A DNA stretch of 64,000 nucleotides from Ophelia neglecta (lineage: Eukaryota): NCBI GenBank assembly GCA_965285935.1, contig OZ260662.1, positions 44,330,001 through 44,394,000 on the forward strand, written 5' to 3'. The notes under the pieces are model-generated. The model was not told where the DNA came from, did no database searches, and was given only the letters and a program-made list of their open reading frames with translations. The position numbers and the translations under genes were made by a program. Shown here piece by piece: positions 25,699 through 63,905 of the stretch; within the stretch, counting starts at the first letter, position 1; every line of letters starts with the position of its first letter.

Positions 25699-25899
25699 NN
25701 NNNNNNNNNNNNNNNNNNNNNNNNNNNNNNNNNNNNNNNNNNNNNNNNNNNNNNNNNNNNNNNNNNNNNNNNNNNNNNNNNNNNNNNNNNNNNNNNNNNN
25801 NNNNNNNNNNNNNNNNNNNNNNNNNNNNNNNNNNNNNNNNNNNNNNNNNNNNNNNNNNNNNNNNNNNNNNNNNNNNNNNNNNNNNNNNNNNNNNNNNNN
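25699..25899. other. Assembly gap (~200 N)
   Basis: Run of N bases. Confidence 1.
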
Positions 25900-33994: not shown

Positions 33995-35438
33995 ATGAGT
34001 CGATTGCATGTTTCGACATTTTGGACACTTTTTCTATGTTCACTGTTCCAGGACAATACAAAGGCACAAGGTAAGATTGTACAATGTCCTATACGGTGCA
34101 TAAGTTAGTTTATATCGCCATTAAATATGCCTAACATATAGATTAAATGTTCATAAGTTTCAAACGACTCTGATTCTTTCGTATAGTGGTTGTTTACATG
34201 TAATTCCATGGTATAATGTCTTTGCTTTTGTTGTACTATCATAGCACTTAGTTTTTATGCCGTTCGATCACTTTTACAGTCACTTGCCCGTCCACCGCTG
34301 GTCCTTCATTTATCCAGGATGCAAACCATGTTTGCCGAATGAGTGTTTGTGCTAATGGCGTGGCCATCCCCGGGGCCATCTGTCCGCCAGCGGACATGGT
34401 CCGAGCTATGGAAACTGCCGACCCAAACCTCTGCTCCCAATGCCGTATGTTCTGCTTGCTGTTACACAGCCTTATGTATCATACATATATTTATATATAT
34501 ATATATATCTTCATTCCCCTCCAATGTCTGGAGAGTTTATGAAAAGCTAGACAAGACAGTATGGTGGATATTCACAGCGAGGTGCATAACATGAATAATA
34601 CATATACATAATTCAAATCCATACATCAATGAATGAAATATTGGCAGAATGCCATAGCAATATCAGAACTGTTGGTTTAAGGTGAAGGAATAACAAAACA
34701 TAGAGAATAGAAAGGGGGCAACCATATTCCTATTATAGATCAGGTAATACTACAAGTCACATTCATCAAGTATATTTTACGTACACCATGAACATCCCGA
34801 ACACCTCGTTCAATGTATGAATTCATTTGTAATACATACATCAGACGGCTTGCTCGCTAATGCAAGACGTCGCAGCAGGAAATGGCGAAAATCATCGTCA
34901 ACGGTCAGGCACAAGCGTCTCTGGTCTCCTTTATCTGTCATATTACGTCATGCATCTCTATACAATACTGAGATCCTAATCTGAAACTTCATAATGATTT
35001 GAGAACCGCGTACTGCTTAAACAAGTCATATAATATTACTTTTTTTACCTCGCAAAAATACCTAAATCAGTTATATGTTGTTACAAACTATGTTTTGTGT
35101 CCATTCATTGGAGGTGTTGCCTCCTGAAAAGACGATGGCACATGCCTTAGTTCGTCCATGTTTTTAAAGCATTACACTAAACGCATCATCGGGAAATGTT
35201 TTAATAGTATTTTACAGTAATCTGCCAGCGCTGGATGAGATTCATGCCGGCCTGGTTCTGTGATAAGCATTTAGTTTGGCACAGAAAAACAACCTTACCA
35301 GTGGCTGGCTTTAAAACCATTGCTTAACTCTGGCTTGTGGCATTTCCTCTAACAAGCATCGAATCAATACCCTTGATAAACGGAGATGTAATAGTGTAAA
35401 TAAATCAAAATAACAATAATAATACTTATTATTATTAA

Positions 35439-35478
<40 letters not shown>

Positions 35479-37017
35479 AACAGATAATACAGATGATAAA
35501 AACAATTACAATAACACTTACTCAATGTAGCGCTCAGTGTCGCGATTATTTCACTAAGCCTTTGATTCAAACTGCAGTAAAATAATTTAAACATGTCTTT
35601 CCAAGGCAAGGGGACGTGTAATGAAGAGGGTATTGTTATTGTTTACTTTTTAATTAATTACTGCGCATGATATCTTATCCTATTTTGATAATAAAGACGA
35701 CAAAATACCTGTTTCTGATCAATTTTATGATTAGAAATCTACCAGCCATAAAACCGAATAGGCATTAAACCTTGAGTGATCTTACATACACAGAATACAC
35801 AGAGAGTCGGAACACTCACCTATTCGGAGGCACACTTCAGCAGTCGATCACCACCCTTAATGATTGTCTTCTAAGATGTGCCGTAGATGGAGTTTGCCAA
35901 GCGGTGGACTTTGACCGTCGAGGCGGCGGTTCCTGCTGGTTTCACTACGCTAATACTTCATGTTCAATGGAGAGTAGTAAACCTGAGTGTAAACATTTAA
36001 AATTTGTCAACTGTTGTAAGTGTGCAGCTTATCTGTTTTTAATCGTTTCTTTTCTTCAGATATAGTGAGATGATTTGGAAGCCCGAAAATCAATCAGGAA
36101 ATAATCCATTTCTATTATTCTTTAGCTACGACAACAACCTCAACCGCAACGTCATCCGCTACAACCATAACAGCCACTACCACATCCACTGCAACAGTGG
36201 TGACAACCACAATACCCACCACGACAACCACAGCACCAGTGGTGACAACCACAATACCCACCACGACAACCACAGCACCAGTGGTGACAACCACAATACC
36301 CACAACGACAACCACAGCACCAGTGGTGACAACCACAATACCCACAACGACAACCACAGTACCAGTGGTGACAACCACAACACCCACCACGACAACCACT
36401 ACACCAGTGGTGACAACCACAACAGCCACCACGACAACCACAACACCAGTGGTGACAACAACAACACCCACCACAACCACTACGGCAGGGGTGACAACCA
36501 CAACCCCAACCACGACAACTACTGCACCAGTGGTGACAACCACTTTATCCAATGGTTCGTACGAAAGACCAATTTGAAGGCAGTTGTTAGCTTTAGGAGC
36601 AATTCAAGCATGTTTAAAGCCCAGTCCCAATAGAATGGAGCAAATGATAAATGTATTTACATTTTAATTAAAGGCCAATGGTCCCGAATATTAAGTAAAG
36701 GAAGCATTATAACATCTAATTTCAAATACGCATGCCCACATTTGAGAACGAACTAATAAAGTGATGTTATTTCATTGACAGATATCTCCCAATCGCTAGA
36801 TATGCACATCTTAGGCGGCGTCCTTCAGGATGCAGCCATTGATACAGATATCAAATGTTTAATCGCCTGCATCAATGACGTCACAACTACATGTGCCGGG
36901 GTCGACTTCGACGGCAACACCAACCGCTGCTGGTTCCACACCACGGCAACCAAGTGTAACACACTGCTCGCGAAAGCAAACTGTTCAAACTACCGCCTGG
37001 GTGCTTGTACTGGGTAG
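33995..37017 (+). CDS. Gene A: secreted chitin-binding-like / PAN(Apple) / mucin / PAN protein, 375 aa
   Basis: Exons: 33995-34070 (signal peptide MSRLHVSTFWTLFLCSLFQDNTKAQ), 34280-34444 (6-Cys CBM14-like), 35794-36015 (PAN), 36126-36554 (Thr-rich) and 36782-37017 (PAN, TAG). All introns are GT-AG phase 1 and the joined frame is open for 1128 nt. AATAAA at 37044-37049. Confidence 0.88.
35427..35477. repeat. (ATT)n microsatellite in gene A intron 2
   Basis: Visible trinucleotide run. Confidence 0.95.
36197..36543 (+). repeat. Coding 42-bp tandem repeat ([14 protein letters not shown]), ~8 copies, mucin domain of gene A
   Basis: The unit GTGGTGACAACCACAATACCCACCACGACAACCACAGCACCA repeats nearly perfectly; one unit is 3 bp shorter. 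Confidence 0.95.
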
Positions 37018-38967
37018 ACTCTCGTTTGTACATTCGTTGAAATAATAAAGCTTTTAAATTGATATTTCTCTTTATGGGTATCCTGAAAATCACCCTGTAA
37101 TCTTTTACTTTGTGTCAAAACATTGGACCAGCGTTACACTACGTCACTTTTCAAATAACCAGGTATTTCACTTTGAACATGAAGCATTCTTGTACTGAAT
37201 TTAAAACTGTCAGTCAATTTTTCAATATTGTAGAGTAACACATAATTATATCTTCGATCTGAATGTTAAAGAGCTTAACATCCAAACGATTTCTAAGTAG
37301 ACGTAATTTCATTTCTTTCGTCTGTTTCCTTACCCATGCAAGTTGATGCAAATTTTGGCAGTTTGATATCAGCATAAACTTTTAAATACACTTCCATTCT
37401 GATTTATGAAGCATTATTTCTTCTTTTCTGTCAACGTGCTTCATTAAAATATTCGTAGTCTCTAAAAATCAAAAAAAAATTCTATAAAAACTACTATGCA
37501 CATTTGATGATGCCATATATCAATGTCGTTCGTAATCTATGAACAAACGAAGGAAACAGTATATATTTAGAGCTTTTCTAACAACCTATTTGGAACACTG
37601 CCTTCTTGATCCTAACCCCAACCCCAACCCTTGCTATGTTTACAATACCTTATATCTTGCTTCTGCATGAGTCTCGTATCTGCAATTTTGAATCAGATTT
37701 TACATTATTTCCTGTTCATGACCTTTATGCCTATAAAAATCTATCTCTCATCAAATAAACTATTGAGCACCGATCAATCAAATAAGTTGGTGAAAAGGAA
37801 AGTATCGATGTAAATGTACAGTGCTAAACTTTTCCGCATTCAATGTTGATTTGATATGTTAAGCCGTTTATTGTTATATAAATTTATAAGCAAACAAATT
37901 TTTCATATACATGTTTCATCATTCCCATGTAAAAGGGCAAAAATGGGATGAAAAATGATTATGCAATCTTCCTCATTTTTTTACTCCGCAAGACGTCCGA
38001 TATATTTTCTGAATATCGTTATGGTAAGACCGAGATGTAAGCACGTTTATCTGGGCAAAATTCGGGGGATTACGTAATCCCAAAATTAAATCGCCCATCC
38101 GAGAATTCTGCCAAAAGCTGTACAAGAAAAATGTATTGTTATTTTTGCGACAAAACTAATAATGCAGATTGTTCTTAAAGGTCTAGAGCCCAAAAATTTA
38201 TTATTGTAACTTATCAAGTTAATGTCGCTCATTTATCGGATGTACGGACTTTGAAGTACAGAATTTGATATAGAGGAAGTTAGGCTTATCAGGTTTCCAA
38301 ATTGATGTCAACACTAAATGAATAATTTTGTTACGGCTTCAATAGTTTAACCTTGAGGGTCGTGTAATACAGCATTCAAATACACCTTCTCAAATGGGTA
38401 GAAAGCAGATCACGATATAATAAATCAGCATAGAAAGCATGCTTTGAAATAAGCATTGCCAATCCGAAAAATTCTGTGCACTAAGTTTGGACGGGCGCTT
38501 CTCTTATGCGAATCGTTACATGAATGGTTTAGAATTTTTATTTTTTTATTTACATACATTAAACATAAAAACAAGTATGATAATTCTAATCAAATACAGT
38601 GTCTGTAGTTGAAACTTTTGTTCCAAATTGGTAAAATGTCTTTAAAATTAACAAGTTTTGAAAGTAACATATTCCAATACCTTAGTTTGCACATTGTTTC
38701 ATCAAGGCTAAATGATTTTGTCAGCATGGGACTAATATTGTTTTAACACCAGTTTACATAGATACTAGGCCTATACAAAATTATGCTTATTAGCACATTC
38801 CAAAATTTAGAATGGATGTTGTTACATGTGAATCCTAATACAAGATGTTTCCATTGTATGTTACAATTTATGCGTTCACCTATATAGATATCATTCTCTT
38901 CCACTACATTCTCCGTTTTTTCCGTTTTTCCGCTGATAAAAAATGCTTCCAATCTTCCAATTGTCTT

Positions 38968-39250
38968 CGTGCATCCGTTCTTCCAACAATTTTCCGTGCT
39001 TCCATTATTCCATTAAGTATCCGTGCCTCCGTTTTGTTAAAATATTTCTTCGTTCATACATTCTTCCTATGTTTTTTGTGCACACGTATTCCATTAATTC
39101 TACGTGTTTTCATACTTCCAACATTTCTTCCTCTTGTTATTCCATTCCTTCATAGTGCATCTGCTATTCCATTAATTATCCGTGCATCCGTAATTGCAAT
39201 ATTTCTTAGTGCATTCGTCTTTACAATAATTTTCCGTGATGCATCATTCT
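38968..39250. repeat. Degenerate ~27-bp minisatellite
   Basis: About 10 units resembling CGTGCATCCGTTATTCCATTAATTATC. Confidence 0.75.
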
Positions 39251-39483
39251 ACACACGTGTGGCCAGCGGGTCTGGATATAGGGTTTAACTCTTGTCCTTG
39301 CCCTCCTCACAGCTGTGCCCAAACGGCCTTTATTTAAATGACCGAACCCATAACTTAGTCATCCACCAATGCCAAAACCAGAGGGTCTGGTTACATAATT
39401 TAACCCTTGCACTAATCGTCCTTTAGATCCTCTCCCACGTGAGTGGCATGTCTAATGGTTGGTTTAAAGATCAAATTCGAGTT

Positions 39484-39720
39484 TTATGTTTCACCGTTGG
39501 TACCAAATAGTAAAGGGACGACCGAGGCGTATGTATCATTTGTGAAGGAAGTCCAGCATAGCGCAAAGCGGTAGCAGAGAAAAAAGTTATGACACGGTGT
39601 CTCACAATGACACAGTGGACTATCAATGCAGTGATGGTTAAACAGATGACAATATAAAGCGCTGCATCCCAGTCTCATTTGGGACAATCATATATTGAAG
39701 GGTCGTGAGCCCAGGCGGAA
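39484..39720 (-). mobile_element. Non-LTR retrotransposon ORF2 C-terminal fragment
   Basis: MRLGCSALYCHLFNHHCIDSPLCHCETPCHNFFLCYRF...LLFG matches the Cys/His-containing C-terminal tail typical of CR1/L2-related LINE ORF2. Confidence 0.7.
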
Positions 39721-39804
39721 GTAACGAGAAGGTGAGGGAGGAGCAGGATTTGGTTTAAGTTTAAAAACGTAAAGAGAAACAAGATGGTCAAATGGTTCTG
39801 ATAA

Positions 39805-39981
39805 CAGTGAAACCTGTAAATTAAGACCACCAAATGGACTGGAGAATACTGGCCTGATTTTAGAGGTGGTCGGTTTAGACAGGTTATTTAGCGTTGAAAG
39901 TATAAGCAACACTATCATATTGGTGGTCTGAATTGACAGGTGGTCTGATTATAGAGGTGTTCTTTAAGGCATGTTTCACCG
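39805..39981. mobile_element. Tc1/mariner (pogo/Tigger-like) MITE, copy 2
   Basis: Terminal inverted repeats CAGTGAAACCTG...CATGTTTCACCG followed by TA, with internal GGTGGTC subrepeats. Homologous to 24761-24932. Confidence 0.75.
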
Positions 39982-42094: not shown

Positions 42095-42217
42095 CACAGG
42101 GCCTTTTAAAACTGAAATCTCCCATATAGAGTCACTATATACTATATCAAAATAACTTATTTTTATATAGTATATAGTGACTCTATATGGGAGATTTCAG
42201 TTTTAAAAGGCCCTGTG
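42095..42217. mobile_element. 123-bp foldback MITE with perfect 53-bp arms and an 8-bp target-site duplication
   Basis: Arms 42095-42147 and 42165-42217 are exact reverse complements. GTGGAGGG is duplicated at 42087-42094 and 42218-42225. Confidence 0.92.
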
Positions 42218-42379
42218 GTGGAGGGTATATTCTCCACACCAAAGCACCGGGGGGGGGGGGGGCATATTGGACAGTCACACCCAAAGACATCACCAATCCA
42301 AGTCCTTGGATTATACGTTGACTCGGGCCTCGCTATAATATGAACCACCAAACAAGCAACCCTCATCATGTTTCATCAA

Positions 42380-44137: not shown

Positions 44138-44150
44138 GCCACCGCCATGG
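44138..44150 (+). promoter_or_regulatory. Consensus Kozak context of the gene B start codon
   Basis: GCCACCGCCATGG directly precedes a signal-peptide sequence. Confidence 0.8.
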
Positions 44151-47100
44151 TTTCACTCTATTTTCTTATCTTCGGATATGCCACCATTGCATTCGCACAG
44201 GACGGTTTAAACAGTCTGAGAGAAGACAACCAACCACCAAAACTTGCCGAATGTAAGATTATTTGATACTTATTTATACATTTAAATCAATAGAAAATCA
44301 ATGTTTGAATATTTCCACTAGCCTTAAATCTGTTTTAAAAAGTACCACTTTCAGTAAACTGTTCATATTATATATTTATGTATTAAGTATGGCGATTCAA
44401 ATTTTATGCTATATTTAACGTGCACCGCTGTTCCGACAATCGCTGTGACTGAAAGTTTGCTCTATCCGTTATCAGATTTTGTCAGTCGAGAAGATGGGTT
44501 CTACCTGGCCCCCAGTTCTGTGGTTGCCAAGGACGTGACGGAGGAGGCTTGTCTCTCAGTCTGTCTGATGAATCCCTCCTGTTTCGCCGTCGACTACGAC
44601 TTCCAGTCTCGGTCCTGCTATGATCACTCCAAGGAGTCCTACTGCGAACTGGACTTAATGAGACCAGCCACCTACAGGGTACATTACAGAAGAGTCCCTT
44701 GTGTCAGAAGTGAGAGTAGTTTTACGAATTTCATGTGCATAAAACACATTTAAAACCACCATCAAAATATCAATACCACTTAAGAAGGGCATTATAAATC
44801 TAGGAAGCGAGTGCGTAAAAGTTGCCACCTTTCTTTGGCGAATATATGGGTCGGATGAAAATAAGTGTTGCCTCAGTTTATATCTTTAACTAGAAACTAT
44901 TTAAGTAATGATGGAACAATATGGTGAAGTAACATTAGGTTCAAACCTTATTTGGCCATAATGATGCAATTACAACAATTTTCTCTGTTGGATATGTTGC
45001 AGGCGAAAATGGTGACCTAGAGGTCGGGTTCAGCTCCTTATACCAACAGCAGCGCGTAAATGGGGGTCGTCTGGCTTGCAGTTCCTGTAACGTCGCTTTC
45101 TGCATGAGTCTGTGTCGAGATAGCGTCGAGTGCCGTTCCATCGACTACTCGTATGACCAGCGCATGTGCTTTCGTCACTTCCGGGATACCCCTTGCCTTG
45201 ACCTTGTGCGCACAGATAACGTTGGCTATTTACACGCCGAGAAAGAATCTTGTGCATTTGGTAAGAATTTATTGACGGCTTATTCGTATGCTGCATGCTT
45301 ATAGAGCATCGAGTGCTGAGCTGTACTAGTTCTGTTTAGCCGTTCTGTGGCAGTAACATAACTGTAATGATTTATTTTAAAAACAAAGAGGGGTTTCGTC
45401 TTTGAATAAGCACAAATGCATACTTTTGGTCTACCTGTCGAGTTCGTCTTATCATAGTGGCCCTAGGTCTAAAACAAATCGCTCTGGATGAATTCATGAC
45501 TCTTTTTAATGCAGATATTGACACTGAGGACAATTCCGCTACAATGGAAGCAGGTAAGATGCCCATCCCGATAGAAACATATTGGTTCAGTTATGGCGAT
45601 CGCGTTTGTTCATGAGAGCTCGCAACGGTTACCCGACTAACTGTCTAGTTATTTCCGATATGAACCAACTGATAGATCTAAAATTAAAATAAAACACATT
45701 AGCATGTATATGAAATACACGAATTTAGTACTATGTGCCTTCCTAATTATTATGATATATTTAATTGGTGGAAAGTAAATGAATTACACCGTATTTACTA
45801 ATTAATTTACAGGCATAGCAATAACGGAGCCACCCCCCATAATGAACATGTCATCGGAGACAGCGTTAACGGGTAGGCCTAACTTAGCATTGGGTTTGTA
45901 ATAGTGTGCAGAGAGCTAGGGGGCACATATTTATGGGTTATTATCATTGGGACCATAAATTATTTTATTGGATCTAATTCATAGAATACAATCATACATA
46001 GGTTGTAATTACTCAGTAAGAAATGACAGTGGCCCATTACAAAAGTACGGCGCCTAATTAGTGGAGCTATTTTAGCTGTTATTTGTTTTTCATTTTCCAA
46101 TTATTCACCGCTAATTAGGTCTATAATAGGATGCAACCTCGGAGGACACGTTGATAATGTATAACCTAAGACTATTTCAGTGTATACCATTCCTTCATTT
46201 ATTAATTTAAGTCAATGGTTTTAGGTATGATTGGAAAAATGGAAGGTTTTCGGATAAGCGGTGGGGCGATCAGGTTTGGAAATGTGACCGAGCGGCGTTG
46301 TGCTATGTTATGTGCCCAGCAAGTGTCCAGCCAATTCACTTGTAACGCCGCTGACTACAATCTGGTCACCAATGTTTGTTTTCTGCACTCATCGGAGAAC
46401 GCCTGCAACCCCCTCGAACCCAACTTAATGTACAACCACCATAGGAGAGTAGAATGTGAAGGTACTTGATATGTTACATTCCACGCGCAACCAACGTATC
46501 GATGTGTCTAAAATATCACATGTAAAGGAAACTATTACAGAATTCAACATTCCTATTACTACGATGTTGAGCCTACAATACGTTAAAGGAATTCGAAAAG
46601 CTTTACATACCAACGTCGGTTTATTTCATCTTTCTCGTGTAAACAGAGACCGTAATTGACTACTGTGCGGCCACTTCTTGTCTAAATGGAGGAACGTGTA
46701 GAAATGTATTGGCAACTTACCAGTGTGACTGCGGTCCGAGGTACACAGGAAGAAACTGTGAAACAGGTAACACATATATACTTAATATTCACATTGTTTA
46801 ATTTTTGTTCATTGTCAAGTTACCCTAGTTAGTCCTGTACAAGTGTTTTTTCAAACGTTATTCGTAGGAGTATTGTTTACCAGCTTATTATATATAATTA
46901 TATGCATCTGTAATGTAATATTGTACAATAATATGTATATTATTATCTCTATAATAATATTATTTACAATGGTCCGTTACCATCATTCCCTAGAAACCTG
47001 TAGAAATCCTTTAAAGGTGATTCTTAAAGCTCGCAGTCATTAAATTTTATTCTCTATGTACGATTCTTGAGCCTCCCCCCTCCCCGCCAACAAAATAGGA

Positions 47101-50100
47101 CGGTAATTTACCCCCCTCCCCCCGACAGAAGATTGAAACTTAACACCACCCTAGCCCGCCCCTCCCCCAAAATTATGTAATATCTTAATACGACATTTGA
47201 GCAAACTACAATTTTACTATCATTGCTCCAAATCCCCTCAAAAAAATAAGGCCTACAGGATTTTTCCTATTATATCTATCAGCGTGGTATTTCGTTACCA
47301 GCAAACGACTGCACAAGACTCTTGTGTGAACGTAATAACATCCACCCTAAAGGCCTCGTGACATACATTGTAACTAGACAGTTTAGCATTAATAGTTTGT
47401 ACTACTGACTTAATGAACTACATATATGATTATGAGAGTTTCGAACACAGTACAGTAAAGTATACTCTGATATAAGCCAATGCCTATTTTCCATATTAAA
47501 TAACATTGTCACGTGGTTGATTTGTTGGACAGAGCTTGATCCCTGTGACAGCTCTCCCTGTGAGAATGGAGCTACCTGCGCGAGTGCTGACGACGAGTTC
47601 GTGTGCGAATGTGCTGCAGGATACACCGGAACTACCTGTGATCAAGGTTAGCAAACAAGCCAGGGAAGTCACGTGTTGTCAAATAATATAAAACAAAATT
47701 AAACCTCTTTATAAAATTCGAATAGCAAGAGGGAATCAAACAAAACTTAGAAATGTTATTAAAGATGGTTCATATAACTATGGCGTGTTTTATTTTTAAT
47801 TTTTTTTTGCCTGTAATAGTAACTTGCAACAGAACCTTGACGAGGACACCGTGGGCCTTTTTACCTCTGATGTTACCCTTGACAGTATGGAAATAATCTG
47901 TTAATTCTGGAGTCAATATGTTTAATGTTTTATCTGTTAGAAATCAATGAGTGTGATCCCAACCCTTGTGTGAATGGAGCGACTTGTGTGGACGAGATCA
48001 ATGACTATAGGTGTAACTGTTTAGTTGGATTCGATGGCATCAACTGTCAGAATAGTAAGAACTGATATTACCTTGTTTTAAAAAGCACCAAATGGATACC
48101 CAATAGAGGCCTTGATATTCTGTGACCAATCACAAAGTTTCCTCAATATATTATGGTGTGAATGATTACAAGACACTACCATTACTTCATAGACATTATT
48201 ATTTTGATTGATTTTACAACATCCACAGTTTTTGAAGTTGATGTACACCTAGCAATGAAACTCAATCATTTCCATGATATATTAATCTACAGATATTGAT
48301 GACTGTGCAAACAGTCCTTGTCAGAACGGAGCTCAGTGTATGGACGCGGTCAATGACTACTTCTGTGCCTGTCTGCCCGGCTACGAGGGAACCAACTGCC
48401 AAACTAGTACGGATATTAACATGTCATCAAATGTTAACTCATAAAATTATTAATCAAATAAGCATTTCTAATGCATAAATACTTTTATTTGTGTTAATTC
48501 ATTAACCATTATCAATGAAGGAGTGAATAACTGTTACATTACTAATATTCATTTGCGTGTTTACTAAGAAATTGATCGCTGTGTTGCCAATCCTTGTGGA
48601 GACCGAGGTACATGTGTTGACGGGACCACCGCGCACACATGTCAATGTTTGGCAGGCTATATTGGAACAAATTGTGAAACCGGTATGATATCTCGGACGG
48701 TTCTTACCTCCGGGACTGCTTGGATAAACATGTTGTCTCAGACTCTTGTTCTATACTTTTTTCTGCAGTAATTTCTTTCTATTATTTCACCAATATTCAG
48801 TTATTTATCTTATGTTTTGCATGAATTATATTTATCTTGTCATTTTAAAGTGCACTATTTATTTATAATTTTGTTGTCGTTTACTTTTTCATTTTTATGT
48901 TATTTTAGTTATAAATCATTTATATATATATTTTTTAATTTCTCCATTGAGTTACACATTTTCCGTTCGTTTTCTTCTTTCATTTAAGTTTATTTTATTA
49001 TTTTTCTTTGAGCAACTTATTTTTCTTTTCTAAGATACTCAAGGTTCCACTGCTCATGACTAACATAAAATACATTAATAATAGAATTTTTTTTCTTGAA
49101 ATCCGTGTAGATATAGATGAATGTGATCCTGATCCTTGTGAGAATGGTGCTACATGTGTGGACGGTATAAACGCTTACACATGTGAATGTGCAGCTGGCT
49201 TCGAGGGGGTCATATGTCAGATAGGTAACAGCATTTTAAACGATTCGGTATTGCCTCGCAACACCTCCAGGCCACAATATCTAGTACATGTAATTACATG
49301 TATCATGTCCAACTGTGGATACACCTGTCAGTGTGTTCGTCCTGTCACGTGACATCCTAGTTCGTTTGGCATGTGATAGAAAGAAAACGGCAACGCCGGG
49401 TTTCTCGATCTGCACACTATATACGAGTCATGGTATATCATGTGGTTTTTAGTGAGTTCTATATAAAGAAATAAGGGAGAAGAATATCCAACCTTTTTAT
49501 AGGATGAGGCCAAATATGTTTAAATTCGTGGAATGGTTTACTGTAAGAGCAAGAAAAAAAATAGCTATATATATATAAGTAAGGCGTTTGAGAAACATAA
49601 ACTTAATAATGGAAACTTATCATAGTATTATGTGTGCTTTTGCAAATTACTGTGCTTGCGGTTTTATCTTATGTAGGCATTACTAGTATTATAGTACGTT
49701 TGGGCTTAATTGCGTTCTCCTGAGTACGTGTAAATATACATGTAATTTACAGTATAAATGTACAAGTTTGTACAGATTTCATTGAGATAAATCTATCTTT
49801 TTTTGAAGCTTTTCGAATGCCCTTTTGAATCGACATACATCTGTTGTGTTGCCTCGAACAGAGTTAAGGCTTTGACAGACCTTTTGAGTAATGGGTGCAA
49901 TAGAAACATAAAGTTTCTTATAGTGTCGACATAATAGCACTATAAACATAATAGCCGTTTAAGAAAACCACTGATAGGAAAAAAGTCACACTCGTGTTAT
50001 CATTGGATCATTATTCCGCCCGTTACTTTACCCATGCTAACGGTGTGCATTTCACCCTGCAGATATAGACGACTGCAACCCCGGACATTGCCGGAATGGA

Positions 50101-53100
50101 GGGCTATGTGAAGATGGCATCAATACCTACACCTGTGTCTGTGTAGAGGGCTTCACCGGCAACGATTGCCAGATAGGCAAGTACCAAACTCTGCCTAAGA
50201 AATTAATCACAACAATAAAATTAATGTACAAATATTTCTTATTTTCGTACAATCATTCTGTTACTTAAACCCATGGAAAATGATATCGCAGATTTTCTTT
50301 TCCAATCATATGCATGAATTTTACGTTAACCATGAAATGTTAGACCCTATATTGGTGATCACTCAGTTGAATGAAAGTGTGAATGTATGATTTATATTCA
50401 CCGGATATCAGACATAGATGATTGTGTCGATACACCCTGCCAGAACGGAGGCAACTGTACAGACGGAGTCAACGCCTTTACTTGTACGTGTGAGGAAGGT
50501 TACGAGGGAGAATTGTGTCAGACAAGTAAGTCAAATCAGACCACCCATTTTGGGAATTTTTGGGAAACTATTTCATTTTCCGTTTAACCGCCCTCCTACT
50601 CTCATCCCCCCCCCCCCTGCTCCTTCTAAATCCCTGGTTCTATCCACTTAACAAAACCATCATTTATTACATATAGAACCGGTAATCATAATATCCATCA
50701 ATACAAACGTCTCGATGCAGTATTTTAGAGTCGTGAGAAGAAAAGGTTATTTAACCTGCTCTCTTTTTGTACTTTGTACCTCGGATAGGATAAATGGCGT
50801 GGCTACTTAGTAGTTTTCTAAAATCCAGTCCGATCCACATTTCAGGATCATATCACAATTTCTCCTTAATTCCATCTTTAGGCCTATACTAGATGTATAG
50901 TTCGCCTAAACCTATTAATATCAAGTATGGAAAATAAAAGGTTTACAATGTTTATACGTCCTTTCCCTTATGTTGATAAAAGGGGAGATTAATGTGTCTG
51001 TCTTGTCTATGGTTTTAGTTACAGATGATTGTAGGGATGATCCTTGCGGAGGTCGAGGCCGGTGTATGGATCTAGACGCTGATTTCATGTGTGATTGTGA
51101 TGCGGGATACACGGGAAAATCTTGTCAAACAGGTATTTACCTCACTACCAATTTCAATATGAATCACTACATACAAGTTATCAGTTTTATATACTTCCTA
51201 ACACTCAACAACTTTTATTTTCATTTATTTTGATATTTTATTTTGATATTATTTATAGACATAGATGATTGTGTGGAGGACCCTTGTGAGAACGGGGCCG
51301 TCTGCGTCGACATTCTGAATGGATACGAGTGTAACTGTGTCCCTGGTTACGAGGGAGTGAACTGCGAGACAAGTAGGTCAAGCCATCCAACTACAATAAC
51401 CTTTGAACCCACTTTTATTCGCCTTTTCTTATCCGTTTACTCAATGATGTGCATTCAATAAAGATCTAGTGAGTAAAGAAAATTAAAGTACAATCACCAA
51501 TGGCATCTCTTAAACGTTTCCCCTCAAATGGGCAATGCTTACTTTTTTGGTATTTTTATCTATTTTAGATACAAACGAGTGTTTGAGCGAGCCTTGTGAG
51601 AACGGTGCAACCTGTAACGACATGATCAATGGTTATTACTGTACATGCGCTGCTGGCTTCATCGGCGACCATTGTGAGACAAGTAAGTGGCGTCGGTTAG
51701 ATATATACAGGACACTATACATTTATAGACAAAATGAAATAATTGTAAGCGTTATTTTAGTGTCTTGATCAAAACATTTGGTTTTTTTACTGTTAATCTG
51801 CTATACGGTTATTAGAAAATGATCCGTCCATATTTAGGGTTATATCAGTTGAAAATGAATCACTTTACAATCTATATCCTGCTTCAGACTTTGATGACTG
51901 TGCTAGCATGCCGTGTCAGAATGAGGGTGTGTGTCTAGACGATATCAATGGCTTTAACTGTGGCTGCTTCGCTGGATTTGTCGGACTACAATGTGAAATA
52001 AGTAAGTTAAAGGTAGAAAAATAATAACTATTAAATTTGCTCCTATAAAAAAGAGTGGTTTGATTTTATTTCTAGTGATTGGGACTATTAAAAATATAGT
52101 ACTGTCAATCGTTTCACTGGTGCCGTAAAATCTTTACTGTTTAATAAGCACTTTTATTTGCACAAGCCCTTTTGCATCAACATCAGCTTGTAAAGTCCTA
52201 TCAGTCATAACTTGAAATAACATTATAATCAACTAAATGAATAATTATTGTTACATGAACGCATGAGAAGTTTTTAAGGGAAAGCGAGCTGCATAACTGT
52301 TAATTTTAAATTCTTCATAATTAATGATTTGTAACTCAGACGAAGACGATTGCGCTGGTGACCCGTGTATTAATGGAGGCACATGTACGGATGGCATAGC
52401 CGAATACAATTGTCAATGTCTGGAAGGTTTCACAGGGCAACAGTGTGAATACAGTAAGTTAGTGAATTAATTCACAGGTCGAAATATTGGGGCATTAATT
52501 TTCTTTGCCTAGTTTTGTGTACAGCTTGTTGCGAAATAAATAATCTAATATTCAAATATATCATAGGCATTTATACGCATTAAAACATTGAAGTATATTT
52601 TACACATTCTTATATGAAAGGTAAACTTGTTATATTTATCATTTTTCAGTTTTGATAGATTGATATGTAGTATTCACAATTTTCGCTGTAGACATAGACG
52701 AATGTGAGGCGAATCCTTGTGAGAATAACGGGACCTGTATGGACCTCGTCAACATGTATACCTGCATGTGTCTACCGGGCTACACCGGCATCGACTGTGA
52801 AACTGGTAAGGATCACTGGCGAGGCTAGCGAAATGTCAATGGGTGGGTGGGGGGGGGGGGGAGAGAGGGGGCAGGTACTTATTGTATAGCAGGCTGCTGA
52901 GAAGAGCACCTAAAGCTGTTAGTTATTCTGTAAAAAGCTTAATATTGGTCGACTGGATATGATGGCGGATTTAGCGTAGCGATGATAACCGCCGATTTAT
53001 GGGCAAATCGGCCAATATATTTTAAGGGTCAAATTATGGAACAATCAGAAACCGCCAAGTGTTCTTGTTTCTAAAATAATTGAGCGATTTAAAAGACGTA

Positions 53101-56100
53101 GTTTTCTAGGAATGCCCCCATTTTATCTGTTTAACCCTTAGCATACACGGAAAGTAAGTTTATCAATATTAGACATTTATATCAAGGTCAAGGACAAACT
53201 AAAATACGACCAAATTCCTTGTATGTGTGTTCCTGTTAGAATATTTATTGTCTCAGTTTGACCTTGAAATAAGACCCAAGGTCAAATTCAATGGCACTTC
53301 TTTTTTCCCTGCATATGAATCCCCACTGATGTTACATATATTTTGCTTAACTATCTTGCACCGTGAAGATCTGTGACACTGAGAGCATTACAAATGTACT
53401 GTTACTGTTTGAAAATTTGTGAGGCTTTTTATTTCATCAAATATGATTAAATTGCTAAGCCTTTAGATACATTTTGTACAAAGTTTTTATACAGTACACA
53501 TGGTGCAATATTAGAGTATATGGCCTGTTGGATTCTGGGGAAAAAATGTTGATTTGTTGATATTCTGGACAGGTCTTTTCAGTACACTATACATGGTTAC
53601 ATAGTGGCCTACATTTTATAAACCTAAAGAGAGGAGACAATAATGAAAGCACGTATTTCGCAAGGCTTTAGCTTTTTAAAAAGTGTCAAAATTAGTAATT
53701 CGTGAACAAACGACGACTTTGTGACAACATGATTCGATGAGCTCAGTTTTGCTTTGCAAGCTGAGCTAAAAATGCAATTGATTTGTTATTTTCAATTAAT
53801 GACCTCCTATTGGTCCGAAATAAATCAGTGAGCCTCCGAAAATTGCCCCCTCCCCTATCCCCCCTGGTAATAGTAGTGACTTGGCTCTTCGGAACACTCC
53901 TTTTTTTATCATGGACTCCTCGGTTTGACCACTACCTTTAGCCACACTCTTGGCCATCCTCTTTCCGTTCGAAGACAAAAGGACAAGGATCTTTTGTGCA
54001 ATGGAGGCAGTAACCAGAGATATTTTCAGGCTATATGCAAATGCTGAACTTGCTTTGATGCCAATGACCTTTACATACAAATTTTATACGCACGCATACC
54101 GCAAGATTTTGCTATACTCCACTTGTAATCATAAAATGTCCAGCTTCCGCCTTGGTGTCACAGCGAACAGATAACGCCATGAGCGTTTAATATTTTTCAA
54201 TCCATGACACGAACGTGTGTGCATAATTTTCTCTTTAAAGCAATAGTAATTTAAAATGGCGGTGACTTTCCCACGCACGTACTTTGTCATTATTCAGATA
54301 TCGACGAGTGCTCAGAGGGGCCCTGTCAAAATGGCGGACTTTGTGTCGACGAAGTGAATAGATTCTTGTGCGTCTGTCCTTCAGGATACGAGGGCTTGAC
54401 CTGTGACACTGGCAAGAACATGGGACTTGTCCTAATTCTTTCCTTTTTCATATTGCATTTCAACAAAAAGATGTAAAACGTATCTCAAGTACAGTTCGCT
54501 CTAAAGTTAAGTTTATTCCTCAGTATTGAAATATAATTATGTTTTGTTTATATCAGAGACAAATGAGTGCGCTCCAAATCCGTGTCAGAATCTTGGTATC
54601 TGTGAAGACTTGGTGAATGGTTATAACTGTACCTGCTCCCCGGGGTACGTCGGGGATAACTGCGAGATAAGTTAGTATATACTACCTCGAGCTACAAACC
54701 TTTTAGTTTTGAAAATTCTTTTTCAGAACTTCTATAATATAATATAAGAGATCTCCGCACTTTACACTTTCACCCTAAAATGATGTAGAGGACTGCCCGC
54801 TGCCCTCCTTGTACATTGCATTATGTACTTCGAAAATAGGTTGCTCCTTCCTGGCTGAGTATAAGAAATTTATAGAATAAGGAATGCTTATAAATTGCGT
54901 TTCTTTCGACAAGGCATGTTGACGGCCTGGCCAGACACGTGTGTGAGCGGCGGGATCCTAAACAGGTCTCTCACGACGGCCGAGTCGTGTATGGAAGCCT
55001 GCATGGCAAGTGACGAATGCTTCGCCGTCGATTTTGACATGGTGGATAACGACTGCCTCCTCCACACAACCTTGACCTTCTGTAGTGAACGTGAACACTG
55101 CCCCGGAAAAATCCATTACCTCTTTGTGCCATGTTTACCAGGTAAGAGATTTGTCCATCGGTTGACAAACCTGCAGCATATATATGTCTGGGTTAAATGT
55201 TAGAGGCAATTTTTGGACTTGACTACGTTCGTTGTCAAATTCTCACTCACCAATAATCAGACGTTTCAATGTTTCAATGTGTCAGCAAATTTTATAGCCC
55301 GGACTAAAACAAATAATTTATTCTTGGTTGTAACCCTTACGCCACTTGGGGATATCTTCTCCCAAGGTGACAGCAAAGTCCTTTTAAAGTTCCCAGGTAA
55401 TCTTGTTAGTTGGGAGGGCGATGTGTCTTCACGTGATCGTAAACCAATAAGGAAATCAGCGCAACAGTTTCCGGCAACGCCCGGACATTCTTAGTTCAGG
55501 CATCCTAAACACAGTTATTTTGACGTTTCCACTCAGAAAGGAGATGACTCGGGGGTCATCCGAGCTCTCTGACTAGTATATTGTCATTTCCCGAGTTTTT
55601 TTTGATTAAATTCAGGCATACGTTTTGATTGATATCAGGTTATAATTCTCCAGCTGCCTTTTCGATAACATGGTGTAACCAGCCGCTGATATAAGTTAGC
55701 GTAATTTACTTAGATTAAGCCACGAAGAAAGCGTTAAGTGGAGAAGAATAACCCGGGTGTTCAAAACACGTTCATCCGCGCATATATTTTCATTGCGGCA
55801 TTATTATATTTGCCATTTAATTTAAATTAACCATTGCTATGCACCCGCTTTGCGGCTTTCTGTGATATTGTGCAGCCAGAGCGCTGTCAATGCTGCATTT
55901 TTGTGCTATTGTGCGACGAACACTTACAGTGTTAACTTACATGGTCAAAACATTTAACGGGCTCTTTAAAGTGGACCATGCTCGACCATTCAATGACTCC
56001 GGAAACGCAGCATGATGTAGATTGATATTTAGGCGTTTACCTGAGGCGATGATAAAATAATGGCGCTTGACCATTCGTGTTTAATATCTCTTGATTATCA

Positions 56101-57652
56101 GCGCATGTCATTGTCCTATTTTTATTGGTACATATTGATTGTGATTACTATTCAGGATAGGCTTAATTCGTGTTAAATATATTCCCATCAGGCGTCACTG
56201 CTGATGACCAGATGAGGTACGTTAGACGATCCTATTCTGTGACTGGGGGCCAGGTTGTGTCGGACCGGAACTGCCCTCGCTGCAGTCCCGACATGTGTCT
56301 TAGTATCTGCTACTTCCAGGACGATTGTGAGGCGGTCGATTTTAACATGGCAACCCTCAGATGTTCATTGCACACCAGTAATACAGTTTGTAACCCCATT
56401 GAACCAGAACCAAATACAGTCCACTACACAAGAGAAATCTGTGGTATGTCCGGCAATTTCTCCACCAACCAGAAATATTATTAAAAATGAACTACCGACA
56501 CTGGGAATTATAATTTCTGTATATACTTTATATTATTAATACATACTTATAAAACAATAGCATCCTTGGTTAAATTTTACATGTTGGTTGACCTCGATTC
56601 TTATGTATTTGATTATGATTAAAACTCTTATATTTACATACGTAATTAAGGTGACTAGAACAAACAATCGGCTAATTGTCGACCAAGTATAGTATTCATT
56701 GCATCAAACATGTATGACATTACAGAGAACCAGAAGACAATAGCGCCGCGTGGGAGCTTTGCAGCGGGGAACTTACCGGCACCTACAAGTGCGTCGTAGT
56801 ATAGTTAGCCTTTTTTTCTCCACTTGTGTCTAAATTCCCTGTGATTAACAATGTCGGTGTGTCTTAATTCCCGTATGTGTCACAATCATATGGTTTATTC
56901 GGAATCACGCAAACAAGGTGATCGATTTAGTTTTTCCCTTGAATAGCATTTTCTATGTGGAGTTCTTTTTCAAATCATAAATATTAAACTGAAGGTTAAT
57001 TTTTTGCTGGCTTTCTTTTGTTTAGGGTCATTAATTAGGAGTTTTAAATGATATGCCTATTTCTACAACGACGAGTCGCTTGGTGCATCAAGTGGCCTGT
57101 CAGTTGAAACTGAAATATTTTATGAATTCAGACTGCCATTTTACTACGTATTGCAGGCATATCACCCGGGTGGCAGGCCTATCCCGGAAGGTTTCAGATT
57201 GGTGGACGACAGTATGAGATGCCTAATCGGGGGGCCACCCACATGTACACCGGTGACCAGTGTCTATCTCTGTGCGAGGATGACGAACGCTGTCTGGCTG
57301 TAGACTACAACTCAAATGATGGCACGTGCTATGCTCATTGGACAGAGGAACGGAAGTGTGGGCCGCTCCTGGACAACCCAGAAATATATCATGTTAAAAG
57401 ACCCGGCCGCTGTGGTAGGTGTCTCTGTAACTCAATTTATCATTACATATGTTTACTAATAAAGAATCAGTTATGAGAAAATGGAATATAAACTTACATT
57501 TTAGCCAATAGCTAACCCACAAGTTTACAAATTTAGCGCTACATGAAGACTTCTAATAACATCCTCGTTTTTCAGAGTTCATATTTAATGAAGAAGGGGA
57601 AACTAGTATGCCTTACCCAGAACCAGATCTCGTTGGAGTAGAGCGAGAGTAA
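44147..57652 (+). CDS. Gene B: secreted PAN(Apple)x3 - EGF x16 - PAN x3 protein (fibropellin/Notch-type EGF repeats), 1213 aa
   Basis: 27 phase-1 exons. Signal: 44147-44252 ([17 protein letters not shown]). PAN: 44476-44709, 45003-45260. Linkers: 45515-45553, 45813-45872. PAN: 46225-46461. EGF: 46647-46766, 47533-47646, 47941-48054, 48293-48406, 48569-48682, 49111-49224, 50063-50176, 50412-50525, 51019-51132, 51259-51372, 51569-51682, 51888-52001, 52340-52453, 52692-52805, 54298-54411, 54557-54670. PAN: 54914-55141, 56192-56443. Linker: 56726-56788. PAN: 57157-57414. Terminal: 57576-57652 ([25 protein letters not shown]). The joined frame is open for 3642 nt. AATAAA at 58013. The linker and terminal exons are the least certain. 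Confidence 0.9.
46647..54670 (+). repeat. Array of 16 EGF-like exons (15 of exactly 114 nt), mostly calcium-binding type
   Basis: Each exon encodes one 6-Cys EGF, e.g. [38 protein letters not shown]. Confidence 0.95.
52870..53890. mobile_element. Non-autonomous DNA transposon/MITE-like element, copy 2, in a gene B intron
   Basis: Colinear homology with 18949-19875 over ~53180-53890. The left boundary is uncertain. Confidence 0.65.
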
Positions 57653-60218: not shown

Positions 60219-60532
60219 ATGAACTTATTAAATATCGTTTTGTTTTTCCAGTGGATATTCAACAATGTGTTGGAATTAACCGCTCAAAATGGTAAGTTTT
60301 GTTTTATTGTTACGCGTATACAGTCTACAGATTAAGTGTGAATCTTGATTGCCAAAAAGTAGGGGGACGAATGTATCACATATTTGCAATATGCTTCATT
60401 GTCGCCTTATATAATACTGAATATATACGCACATATCATATATTTACATGTGCAAGAATGATTTCTATACTTGACTATTGCCAAAAGCGATAAATATTTT
60501 ACGGTTTTTAATACATTATTATCATTAAAAGT

Positions 60533-60575
<43 letters not shown>

Positions 60576-63500
60576 CATTATTATTATTATCATTATTATC
60601 ATTATCATCAATATGAATAAGGCAATTCCAACTCGAATTGGGAAGAATTACATAAAATGGTCCAATATTTAATCCAACATTGGCAGAATAAGTCGTTTAT
60701 TTGCATAGTTGGGTTTTGCCAGCGTTACTAAATTGAATATGGTAGCGATTATTCCCATGGAGGTGGGATCTACCAAAAAGAAAACTATTAACATGAAATT
60801 AACATTTTTGTGTTTATTCTATTGGAGAACACTCACATATACAGTAAGGTTAGAAGATATAAATCTACAAACATTCCAGACTACCCTACTTCCGTTTCCG
60901 TGTTTTCCACCAAGCATACTTTGATTTCGATACATAATTTGTCTAAGGCATCTCTTTATAAAGCTTGCTATCATAACGGACGCAGCGGGCTCGAGTATGC
61001 CAGGCTTCGTCGATTCTTCTTTTTCTATGTATCCATTATTAGTATATCATTATCATAAAAATATTATAAATATTATTATATCTGTAAACGATCATGTGGT
61101 CATTTATCACAAAATCAGATAATTTTTCTCTATTCATAAATGCACTTCTCATAACAGAAATTGCTGCTACATACATTGAGGGCTATGGCATACCTGGTGG
61201 TATAAAGAAGAGAGAGTTCAGAACTCTATTACAATGTTTGCAAGCTTGTGCAAAAGATTCAGACTGTTTGGGTTTGGATTTCAACACAAGAACGGAAAGT
61301 TGCTACTACCACCCGTCGAGTACAATTTGTAACCAACTGGAGAAGAAAACGAATTGCCTCCACATCCAGATGACAAATTGCTGTATGTTTATATTTACAA
61401 TGCTTTACCTGATTTAGATAAGCAACAAAGATATAAGACTGGATGAAACATGTTTGTTGCACATAAAGCTCTTATATAACAGTTTATAAATGACTCGAAT
61501 TCCTTACATATTATTGTATACCGTTATTGACAGCGACCAGTAATGTTGATGAGGACAGTGATACAACGACAAGAAGGGTTCAAACAACCTCAGCCACCAC
61601 GACAATTCCCACAACCACAACGACTTTTCCAGCAACCACAACGACTACTCCTACCACCACCACGACTATTCCTACCACCACCACGACTATTCCTACCACC
61701 ACCACGACTGCCCCTACAAGCACAAAGTTGTCGACAACAACGCAAGTTCTATTTACAACGAGCAACAGTCCATCTGACTTTGAACCTTCCAATGCTTCAC
61801 AGAGGACTGAATCTCAGTCGAGCATTGACACCTCAGGTCAGTACGTTTCTGAAGTTTAAAGATTTGGAAAAGCCAGGTGTCTTCTAAAAAGAAACCACAA
61901 GTCGTCGGAGTCATACAAACTCCTCGTATAATATATATGACTCGGTCATTACAGCCATATAGGCCTATTTTTCTCTATTTCAAAGCCTTTCATGATATCT
62001 AGTCATATTTATTTCCATCGGTCCTGCCATCAGCGTACCTGTTTACTGCACCAGGAATGTATGTCTCAGGCGGATATTTTCGCCACCAGGGTGTGCGACA
62101 ACAAGAGTGTCTTGACGCATGCGCCGCTCAGCCTCTCTGTTTGGCTGTAGATTACACAGTCCCTGCTGGAGGATGCTACTTCCACGGGACTGACACCTAC
62201 TGTGGTCAATTGAGAAACCTGTCTAGTAGCACGCACTACAAACGAGCCCTATGTGTTGTTGAAGGTAACCCAATGAGAACGCAAGATAACATAAACAGGA
62301 CCAAAGCTAATTGGCATACATTCGAAAACACCAAAATTTTCACATTGTCTTTGATAACCACCTGTTTGATATTTGGATTTTTAGGTTTATCTCTTTTTAT
62401 GTCGTTCATGCTGCTTTTCCAGGGAGTAACCAAGTAATAGAGATGTACCGAGGAATGTATTCCCCTGGTGATAGTTTGCTATGTGAACAAGGTTGTACAA
62501 TAGAAACGTGTATGGCAATGTGCGAACTCGTTGACGAGTGTGTTGGCGTCTCAATCAATACAACATCCGGGACTTGTCTGGCAAACGCCCCTTCCAATGT
62601 ATGTCTCCTAAACCGCAGAAGCCCAGATGTGGTTCAGGTTAACTTAGGACCGTGCTGTGAGTTTAACTTATGTTCTTTATAATCAGTGATATAAAATCAA
62701 ATTCCTCTGTGAAACAGAGTACATTGTATGCATCGGGCAAGAGAGTGTCCCCTTTCTAAGACAGACTTTTAGGCGTGTATTAGTTCTCACGAAGGTGGCG
62801 GTGGGAGTGGGGGTTTAGCAATTTTGGGGAAAACAATTAGGTTTTTTTTAAGCCCCCGCCATCATAAGTGTCGTAGTTCTTGAACCCCCCCCCCCCCCCC
62901 AGCTTACGCGGTTTTACGTGTCAGTGTCCTCCTGGGTTTACCGGAACTAACTGTGAAACAGGTGGGGAACAATACAAATCTCAAGCGGAATTCCCATCCA
63001 GGACATTTATCATTACATTAAGGATTTCCTTTCTAGATTATAAAATTGAATATACATTATAATGCACGATTTTTCTGATGACTGCATGGCAATTCATGTC
63101 CCTGATCAACTTATTCACCGCAGATATTGATGAGTGTCACAGCAACCCATGTCAACATGGCGGGAGATGTATTGATGACGTGGATAGCTTTATATGTGAT
63201 TGTCAGCCGGGTTTCTTTGGTTCAGATTGTATCATTGGTAACGTTATGGTCAATATAATACAGAAGAAATTGCCGTACACTTCTTACATAAACATATGTC
63301 GCAGTCAGACATATGTGCCTTTTCACCATGGGATTTTGCGGATTAATGTACTTTCATTTTAATATGAACATATAACCAAATTTGGACATCCAAATCAGAT
63401 ATATTCAGTTGCATCCCCAAATGCTAACTGGACGGGGACTTTTATGCAGGAAGATAATCAGAGCAATGAATAAGTGTTCCGTCTCTTATAGACAGTGATT

Positions 63501-63905
63501 CGACATATAACTACTTTTTCAAAATCGGTTTTGCCGGTTTTATAGCCACAGAAGCATTATTGTGGAGCTGGCATCAAATGATTATAATGTATCATTTATG
63601 AGGATCTGATGCCAAAATTGAACATTATGCAGCTCTATGTTGCCTTGCACAATTCCACAAGTTGGTAGAAACAATAGCTGTGCAGAACTAGGAAGGAGTG
63701 GGGGCATTTTCTTCTCACTTTTTTGAAGTTTCTTCCCACTGCTCTCCTTTAATTGTGTAAACCCTTAAATGCGACATTTTTCATACTGCAGAACTTAACG
63801 AGTGTGCCAGTTCACCTTGTGAAAATGATGGTACGTGCGTTGACAGGGTCAATGGATATCTGTGTGTATGTGAGTCCGGCTTCACAGGGACCAACTGTGA
63901 AATAG
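60219..63905 (+). CDS. Gene C: secreted PAN / mucin / PAN x2 / EGF-repeat protein, 3' incomplete
   Basis: Phase-1 exons: 60219-60291 (signal-like [24 protein letters not shown]), 61158-61382 (PAN), 61534-61836 (Thr/Ser-rich), 62034-62264 (PAN), 62423-62656 (PAN), 63124-63237 (EGF) and 63792-63905 (EGF, GC donor). A half EGF exon lies at ~62901-62961. TATAAA at ~60083. Confidence 0.85.
60535..60610. repeat. (ATT/ATC)n microsatellite in gene C intron 1
   Basis: Visible trinucleotide run. Confidence 0.95.
61596..61718 (+). repeat. Coding 21-bp tandem repeat (PTTTTTI), mucin segment of gene C
   Basis: About 5-6 units resembling CCTACCACCACCACGACTATT. Confidence 0.9.
62901..62961 (+). pseudogene. 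5'-truncated EGF exon remnant in gene C
   Basis: Encodes only [20 protein letters not shown] followed by a G|gt donor. It is preceded by a poly-C run rather than the first half of the EGF. Confidence 0.7.

Follow-up and report, generated by a model that had tools for sequence, protein, structure and literature searches.

What do the modular genes in the 3′ half of a 64-kb stretch of the Ophelia neglecta genome encode, and what might their products do for the animal? The stretch (GenBank assembly GCA_965285935.1, contig OZ260662.1, positions 44,330,001–44,394,000 of the forward strand; hereafter the window, with position 1 as its first letter) comes from a 762-Mb, chromosome-scale genome, and its 3′ half is intron-rich with 34–42% GC. 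Between positions 33,995 and 63,905, its + strand carries exons for exactly 11 PAN/Apple modules, 16 + 2 intact EGF modules, and two Thr-rich mucin segments, which group into three co-oriented genes (A, B, and C) with a signal peptide at the start of each. These genes open a longer tandem array, and we lean towards the view that this array encodes secreted, non-membrane glycoproteins of an annelid-wide PAN/Apple-repeat family, which probably build or cross-link a surface matrix or mucus. The functional part of this view is put forward as a hypothesis.

Modules and exon structure of genes A, B, and C

We added 70 kb of downstream sequence to the window, for 133 kb read in total. Gene models were built from splice sites read off the sequence and scored with a simple matrix, and similarity searches of the window products were made single exon by single exon. 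In a pattern scan of stop-to-stop frames, PAN-like and EGF-like frames were confined to the + strand and to positions after 35.7 kb, and no PAN or EGF exon was found on either strand in the first 34 kb of the window, which holds scattered open frames only.

The module common to the three genes belongs to the PAN/Apple class by family profile, by fold (a beta-sheet against one helix), and by Cys framework. Ten of the 11 PAN exons in the window match Pfam PAN_1 (PF00024) with E-values from 5.5e-7 to 0.022; five exceed the gathering score, and the other matching exons score 15–20.5 bits. The eleventh (62423–62656) has no Pfam match and was linked only through a local profile of its neighbors (1.1e-18). 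The 11 copies counted in the initial annotation proved exact. Across the 133 kb, this local profile detected 23 modules, every one of them on the + strand and downstream of 34 kb, and their alignment displayed six invariant Cys along with near-invariant G, D, and H residues, in agreement with the motif given earlier. Module-to-module identity is only about 28%, and the retention of all six Cys despite this divergence therefore argues for selection. An AlphaFold (AF2) model of module A1, the first PAN module of gene A, was built from the module alignment and reached a predicted local distance difference test score (pLDDT) of 97.4, with strands and one helix. Its best structural matches in the PDB (Foldseek) were all PAN/Apple domains, with template modeling (TM) scores of 0.66–0.74: the HGF N domain, plasminogen, plant SRK, Sarcocystis SML-2, and factor XI. 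By sequence, the best PDB matches were the apple domains of Toxoplasma MIC4 and the leech anti-platelet protein LAPP (1I8N; whole module, E 3.7e-5). The module tree was mostly unresolved, and the only groups seen were the terminal-type PANs, F2/P0028-2, and B1/F1/P0028-1 (P0028 being a relative described below).

Each module occupies one exon with phase-1 introns on both sides, all junction codons are sense codons, and introns span 126–1,492 nt. Single-module phase-1 exons of this kind could therefore be added, duplicated, or skipped with the reading frame intact. A hydrophobic stretch comes after each of the ATG codons at 33995, 44147, and 61094. The earlier description of three co-oriented genes that each open with a signal-peptide exon thus stands for the number of genes, their orientation, and their signal peptides, with the correction that in gene C the signal peptide shares its exon with the first PAN module. 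For gene A, the exons are as follows:

33995–34070, + strand: gene A exon 1, start codon and signal peptide (read from the sequence; phase-1 donor AAG/GTAAGA, score 6.4)
34280–34444, + strand: gene A exon 2, 54-amino acid (aa) six-Cys module (phase 1-1; splice sites read from the sequence)
35794–36015, + strand: gene A exon 3, PAN module A1 (Pfam PAN_1 E 4.6e-4; local profile 7e-24; PAN fold in the AF2 model)
36126–36554, + strand: gene A exon 4, Thr-rich mucin segment of proline/threonine/serine-rich (PTS) type (142 aa, 61% Thr; 42-nt/14-aa unit, 9.2 copies)
36782–37017, + strand: gene A exon 5, PAN module A2 followed by a TAG stop (Pfam PAN_1 E 4.6e-3; AATAAA at 37044–37049)

Gene A thus encodes ~375 aa, laid out as signal peptide, six-Cys module, PAN, Thr-rich spacer, and PAN. 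Its Thr-rich segment is tandemly repeated, as expected of a mucin-type PTS domain, and a comparable exon is found in gene C. Composition and tandem repeats here, along with Pfam EGF matches in genes B and C, confirmed the mucin segments and EGF arrays reported at the outset.

The fate of exon 2 was different. It had been annotated as a chitin-binding-like module (CBM14/peritrophin-A), an assignment that was not confirmed: no Pfam family, including CBM_14 (PF01607), matched it even at E ≤ 10, and the aromatic pair typical of CBM14 between the second and third Cys is lost (CRMSVC in exon 2, versus CRYYWC, CRFFIC, and CHYWLC in relatives). A search of the O. neglecta genome found no paralogue elsewhere, an Atlas search returned no usable match, and the single-sequence AF2 fold was poor (pLDDT 48.8). 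The first four Cys and their flanks align with P0008, P0163, and P0032, and with the N-terminal module of the Owenia and Capitella proteins, which occupies the same position after the signal peptide, and the Owenia counterpart is closest to CBM_14 clusters in the Atlas (features 0.85, structure TM 0.5–0.6), a likeness of lead level only. We call exon 2 a putative degenerate member of a CBM14-like module class and do not file it as chitin-binding.

Gene B encodes ~1,150 aa, arranged as signal peptide, three PANs, 16 EGF repeats, and three more PANs:

44147–44252, + strand: gene B exon 1, start codon and signal peptide (phase-1 donor)
44476–44709, + strand: PAN module B1 (Pfam PAN_1 E 3.8e-5, above cutoff)
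45003–45260, + strand: PAN module B2, 8-Cys type (Pfam PAN_1 E 0.022; local profile 2.8e-20)
46225–46461, + strand: PAN module B3 (Pfam PAN_1 E 8.2e-6, above cutoff)
46647–54670, + strand: EGF array of 16 single-EGF exons, one of 120 nt and fifteen of 114 nt, phase 1-1 (Pfam EGF for each); exon starts at 46647, 47533, 47941, 48293, 48569, 49111, 50063, 50412, 51019, 51259, 51569, 51888, 52340, 52692, 54298, and 54557
54914–55141, + strand: PAN module B4 (Pfam PAN_1 E 4.3e-4; donor score 7.1)
56192–56443, + strand: PAN module B5, 8-Cys type (Pfam PAN_1 E 8e-5, above cutoff)
57157–57476, + strand: PAN module B6, terminal 'SPGWQAYPG' type (Pfam PAN_1 E 5.5e-7; TGA at 57474–57476; AATAAA at 57458)

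All EGF exons of genes B and C pass Pfam EGF (PF00008; E 1e-6 to 2e-12) and are below the cutoff for Pfam EGF_CA; with the junction codon included, the calcium-binding pattern (PS01187/PF07645, [DEQN]-x-[DEQN]2-C and later D/N and F/Y) is present in 12 of the 16 gene B repeats. Three EGF exons are followed by GC donors (GC at 50177, 54412, and 63906), each in the canonical G/GCAAG context, and these are probably genuine GC-AG introns; two of them, after 50176 and after 54411, belong to gene B. The introns that join the third PAN to the first EGF (185 nt) and the sixteenth EGF to the fourth PAN (243 nt) contain no start exon or signal peptide, and because they leave no space for another start exon, gene B is best read as one gene. 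Near its 3′ end, a phase-1 GT after 57414 may serve as an alternative donor or go unused. Further upstream, a stretch at 57070–57123 displays weak likeness to the linkers that precede the terminal PAN in two relatives (P0072 and P0028); its frame differs from that of the PAN exon and it lies too close to the 57157 acceptor for an in-frame splice, and it may represent a decayed linker.

Gene C begins near the end of the window and continues past it:

61094–61382, + strand: gene C exon 1, start codon, signal peptide, and PAN module C1 (Pfam PAN_1 E 2.2e-6)
61534–61836, + strand: mucin-type Thr-rich exon, repetitive
62034–62264, + strand: PAN module C2 (Pfam PAN_1 E 7e-5; alternative acceptor 62055)
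62423–62656, + strand: PAN module C3, the most divergent copy (six core Cys aligned in the local profile)
62903–62961, + strand: relic half-EGF of 59 nt that retains just its last three Cys and is preceded by a 16-nt poly-C run and AG (62885 on)
63124–63237, + strand: EGF exon, calcium-binding type (Pfam EGF E 3.5e-11)
63792–63905, + strand: EGF exon, calcium-binding type, with a GC donor (Pfam EGF E 3.6e-9)
65,233–66,611 (beyond the window): candidate exons in open frames, one Cys-rich and two with short motifs recalling LamG/ConA-like domains

The N-terminus of gene C, with signal peptide and first PAN in one exon, is collinear with that of a Capitella protein (P0011). The half-EGF is probably skipped, its acceptor phase being mismatched to the preceding phase-1 donor, and appears to be an exon remnant produced by a deletion or insertion. 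The open frames at 65.2–66.6 kb probably belong to gene C; they gave no Pfam match and displayed only an insignificant likeness to the Cys-rich/LamG_3 tail of P0011.

Membrane segments were evaluated with a 19-residue Kyte–Doolittle mean of 1.4 as the criterion, and no exon of genes A and B past the signal peptide reaches this value, which upholds the earlier statement that both products lack a membrane anchor.

An extended array and its annelid relatives

Genes A–C are only the first three of at least seven genes in an array that extends to about 95.7 kb in window coordinates, i.e., ~32 kb past the window, and that carries its 23 PAN modules over ~62 kb. Genome-wide, a profile search detected at least 82 modules of this PAN subtype, which fall into ten or more clusters distributed over chromosomes 1, 2, 5, 9, and 12. 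The initial annotation was therefore right to describe a local expansion with a shared divergent PAN and three genes in the window, and too narrow in calling it a cluster of three. Downstream of the window, the array and its neighbor include:

68.77 kb (approximate), + strand: start exon with GTAAGT donor of a stand-alone signal peptide-PAN-PAN-PAN gene, with the PAN triplet at 69.4–72.3 kb
within 68,700–95,700, + strand: five-PAN gene
88.5–90.7 kb, + strand: Pro/Gln/Trp-rich-PTS-PANx3 gene, its first PAN 78% identical to a plankton metatranscriptome protein
within 68,700–95,700, + strand: single terminal PAN
102–133 kb (approximate), + strand: separate gene adjoining the PAN array; its exons encode EGF, VWD (two or three), TIL, and LDLa modules, and a further exon carries over 2 kb of Thr/Pro-rich repeat

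Among the downstream array genes, at ~79–85 kb, sits an inserted reverse-transcriptase element. The separate VWD/TIL/LDLa gene resembles a gel-forming mucin or SCO-spondin-like gene.

To place this family among known proteins, the profile was searched against 1.84 billion representative proteins, which yielded 3,433 matches at E ≤ 0.001. The nearest full-module matches, at 40–55% identity, were from Owenia fusiformis (CAH1788818.1, CAH1788508.1, and CAH1796671.1), Capitella teleta (ELU14836.1), and plankton contigs, the latter being short, intron-less contigs from metatranscriptome-type samples. A word-indexed search added another Capitella relative (CAPTEDRAFT_224151). As the initial annotation had held, the architectures match no named family: the close annelid relatives are all hypothetical or unnamed proteins, and a literature search on annelid PAN/Apple-mucin proteins found nothing specific.

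These relatives share a common plan, with a signal peptide, an N-terminal six-Cys module, PANs separated by Thr/Pro-rich spacers, and a terminal PAN after 'PGPTVLPSGW.YPG'. Seven of them (P0008, P0016, P0028, P0029, P0040, P0072, and P0163) end 5–25 aa past the terminal PAN type with no hydrophobic tail. Among these, the 359-aa protein P0028 (signal peptide-PAN-PAN-linker-PAN) is collinear with the triplet at 69.4–72.3 kb and similar to the C-terminal triplet of gene B. The relatives' transcripts provide the strongest evidence at hand for expression, secretion, and lack of an anchor in this family. Other relatives fuse the same PAN subtype to trypsin, collagen, LamG_3, C1q/VWA, CAP-MAM, SUEL-lectin/F5-8C, or FN2 domains, and, from these architectures, the PAN module is evidently an exon that annelids shuffle freely. 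Two of the plankton-derived transcripts (P0009 and P0020) carry it next to a trypsin-like serine protease, a combination that parallels vertebrate prekallikrein and factor XI.

The locus marks out a large PAN-repeat family of secreted glycoproteins, conserved between Owenia and Capitella, of which no member has been studied, and it offers a clean example of phase-1 exon-module shuffling into new extracellular architectures. Annelid mucus, tubes, cuticle, and chaetal sheaths matter ecologically and attract interest as materials, and their protein components are largely unknown; genes A–C are concrete candidates for proteomic and in situ work on these matrices.

Candidate functions and competing explanations

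How could such proteins act? We propose that they would be exported into an apical extracellular layer, i.e., mucus, glycocalyx, cuticle surface, tube lining, or a chitin-associated structure. The proteins are probably heavily O-glycosylated. Calcium-binding EGF arrays form extended rods and PTS segments form hydrated brushes, and the annelid cuticle is collagenous. The PAN modules may serve as binding heads for glycans or matrix proteins, for which LAPP and the Caenorhabditis elegans protein LET-653 provide precedents, with mucin and EGF segments as hydrated or stiff spacers, such that each protein could be a bivalent or multivalent cross-linker. Under this proposal, the gene B product would be a two-headed strut and the gene A and C products two-headed mucin-like linkers. 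Co-assembly of the three products into one structure, put forward in the initial annotation, would be a further hypothesis. The neighboring VWD/PTS gene would fit a mucus or matrix neighborhood, if weakly. A more specific and rather improbable version would make the array and the VWD/TIL giant-PTS gene a co-regulated annelid "surface-layer kit", in which a conserved, annelid-specific PAN-PAN-linker-PAN cassette docks to cuticular collagen, chitin, or mucin glycans, and in which gene B, with a cassette at each end of a calcium-stiffened 16-EGF rod, acts as a fixed-length strut that sets the spacing of the layer.

Several observations weigh against a secreted matrix or mucus role, or against the gene models on which it is built. 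Adjacency to the VWD/PTS gene is weak evidence of common function, and tandem expansion with fast divergence would suit immune or gamete-recognition genes equally. Signal peptides were called by eye and from hydropathy, and the hydrophobic N-terminal stretch of gene C includes a Glu. We were unable to position the small linker exons within the PAN triplets. In three genes of the array (B, F, and D), the last Cys of the terminal PAN is immediately followed by a phase-1 GT, which leaves room for an undetected last exon. The combination of PAN with an EGF array was absent among the best 150 of the 3,433 profile matches and in a word-indexed search seeded with Capitella P0011, and no EGF exon was found in six other PAN clusters of the genome (180 kb), such that the gene B layout is without independent support. 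Finally, a search for O. neglecta sequencing runs found three DNA runs, all of a single sample, and no RNA, and the gene junctions, expression site, and co-expression are predictions only.

The most serious competitor, which we nonetheless consider unlikely, is that the array encodes soluble lectin-like recognition factors, i.e., agglutinins or opsonins of mucus or coelomic fluid whose PANs recognize microbial or other foreign glycans, in which case the expansion would reflect an arms race. This would be consistent with a large tandem family of at least 82 strongly diverged modules, with a best PDB sequence match to the galactose-binding apple domains of MIC4 and a further match to the Sarcocystis lectin SML-2, and with relatives that join PAN to SUEL-lectin, C1q, F5/8C, or trypsin domains. 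However, mucin spacers, a degenerate CBM14-type module, and a long EGF rod are more typical of matrix proteins.

We give little credence to the possibility that the models are partly wrong or the genes dead, with the EGF array and PAN triplets of gene B derived from separate or decaying genes and the array itself an unexpressed product of exon duplication. The run search and the lack of a PAN + EGF relative described above would fit this scenario, as would the broken half-EGF exon in gene C and a B3 frame that would stop three codons beyond its donor. By contrast, all 23 PAN and 18 EGF exons are open with every core Cys kept, all junctions are in frame, the GC donors sit in canonical context, and the two introns flanking the EGF array hold no start exon or signal peptide, all of which argue for intact genes.

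Less credible again is an origin as egg-coat or gamete-recognition proteins, i.e., PAN/EGF proteins that are secreted, diversify fast, and belong to the oocyte envelope or the sperm surface. Rapid divergence and tandem duplication are in keeping with it, and the related plankton metatranscriptome transcripts could come from spawned gametes, embryos, or larvae; yet these transcripts suit larval epithelia equally, and no ZP domain or other egg-coat hallmark was found in the 133 kb read. The least probable explanation is that gene B (and C) encodes a membrane-tethered adhesion or signaling receptor of Notch/Crumbs type with an undetected transmembrane exon downstream of the last PAN, as the Notch-like 38-aa EGF repeats with O-fucose and O-glucose consensus sites and the phase-1 GT behind the terminal PAN of B, F, and D might suggest, but a comparison of the regions downstream of these three PANs at the protein and DNA levels revealed no common exon, the relatives' transcripts stop soon after the terminal PAN type, the B6 open frame reaches a stop with an AATAAA 11 nt upstream, and no exon beyond the signal peptides has a hydropathy mean above our membrane criterion.

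Comparison with known systems and flanking features

The modules themselves are all known, in a family that is uncharacterized yet present across annelids. The PANx3-EGFx16-PANx3 arrangement of gene B was not found in the other organisms searched and seems to be a local invention. Invertebrate genomes commonly show lineage-specific shuffling of extracellular modules.

Closest in design are the Owenia (CAH1788818.1 and CAH1788508.1) and Capitella (CAPTEDRAFT_224151 and ELU14836.1) relatives, which share the PAN subtype, signal peptide, Cys module, Thr/Pro spacers, and a terminal 'LPSGW.YPG' PAN with a short tail and no membrane segment. Unlike the O. neglecta genes, they have no EGF repeats, and their Cys modules keep the aromatic pair lost in gene A. 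Among functionally studied proteins, LET-653 is a PAN-PAN-mucin-ZP apical matrix protein whose PAN domains localize it to the luminal matrix (PMC4970718). Genes A–C resemble it in joining secreted PAN/Apple domains to a Ser/Thr-rich linker, which in LET-653 is O-glycosylated; however, LET-653 requires its own ZP domain for function, and the likeness is one of design. No ZP domain was matched in any Pfam scan of the 133 kb, and the exons of genes A and B are all assigned to signal peptide, Cys module, PAN, PTS, or EGF.

LAPP is the only annelid PAN protein with a solved structure, and it binds collagens I, III, and IV (PMC7191736). It is likewise secreted and aligns with the whole module, but it is a small salivary protein of a blood feeder with a single PAN and no mucin or EGF parts. 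The O. neglecta locus suggests that this leech anticoagulant was recruited from the wider PAN family described here. Secreted tandem PAN/Apple arrays are also known from Toxoplasma MIC4, Eimeria MIC5, and Sarcocystis SML-2, where they act as lectin-type adhesins; these micronemal adhesins are protist invasion proteins with a different context and architecture, and the MIC4 match spans only the central third of the module.

For the EGF repeats, the nearest parallels are the arrays of Notch, Crumbs, and fibropellin, which similarly consist of 38-aa repeats, one per phase-1 exon, mostly with the calcium-binding signature and with several O-fucose/O-glucose consensus sites. In contrast to these proteins, no LNR, LamG-between-EGF, transmembrane, or avidin-like part was seen in gene B, and PAN triplets cap both ends of its array. 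Arthropod mucin-peritrophins (peritrophin-A/CBM14) share the signal peptide, six-Cys module, and mucin spacer, but they contain no PAN modules, and Pfam CBM_14 matches neither gene A exon 2 nor its counterparts in the relatives. The parts expected of gel-forming mucins (VWD-C8-TIL and cystine knot) are absent from genes A–C, with VWD and TIL found only in the separate gene 40–70 kb downstream.

Upstream of gene A, the window contains a run of N at 25,699–25,899, and one of the scattered open frames in the first 34 kb is probably of mobile-element origin. At the very start of the window, one longer frame was recorded:

2–1474, − strand: 491-codon open frame that leaves the window at its start, coiled-coil-like and acidic, which may derive from a mobile element or from an unrelated gene

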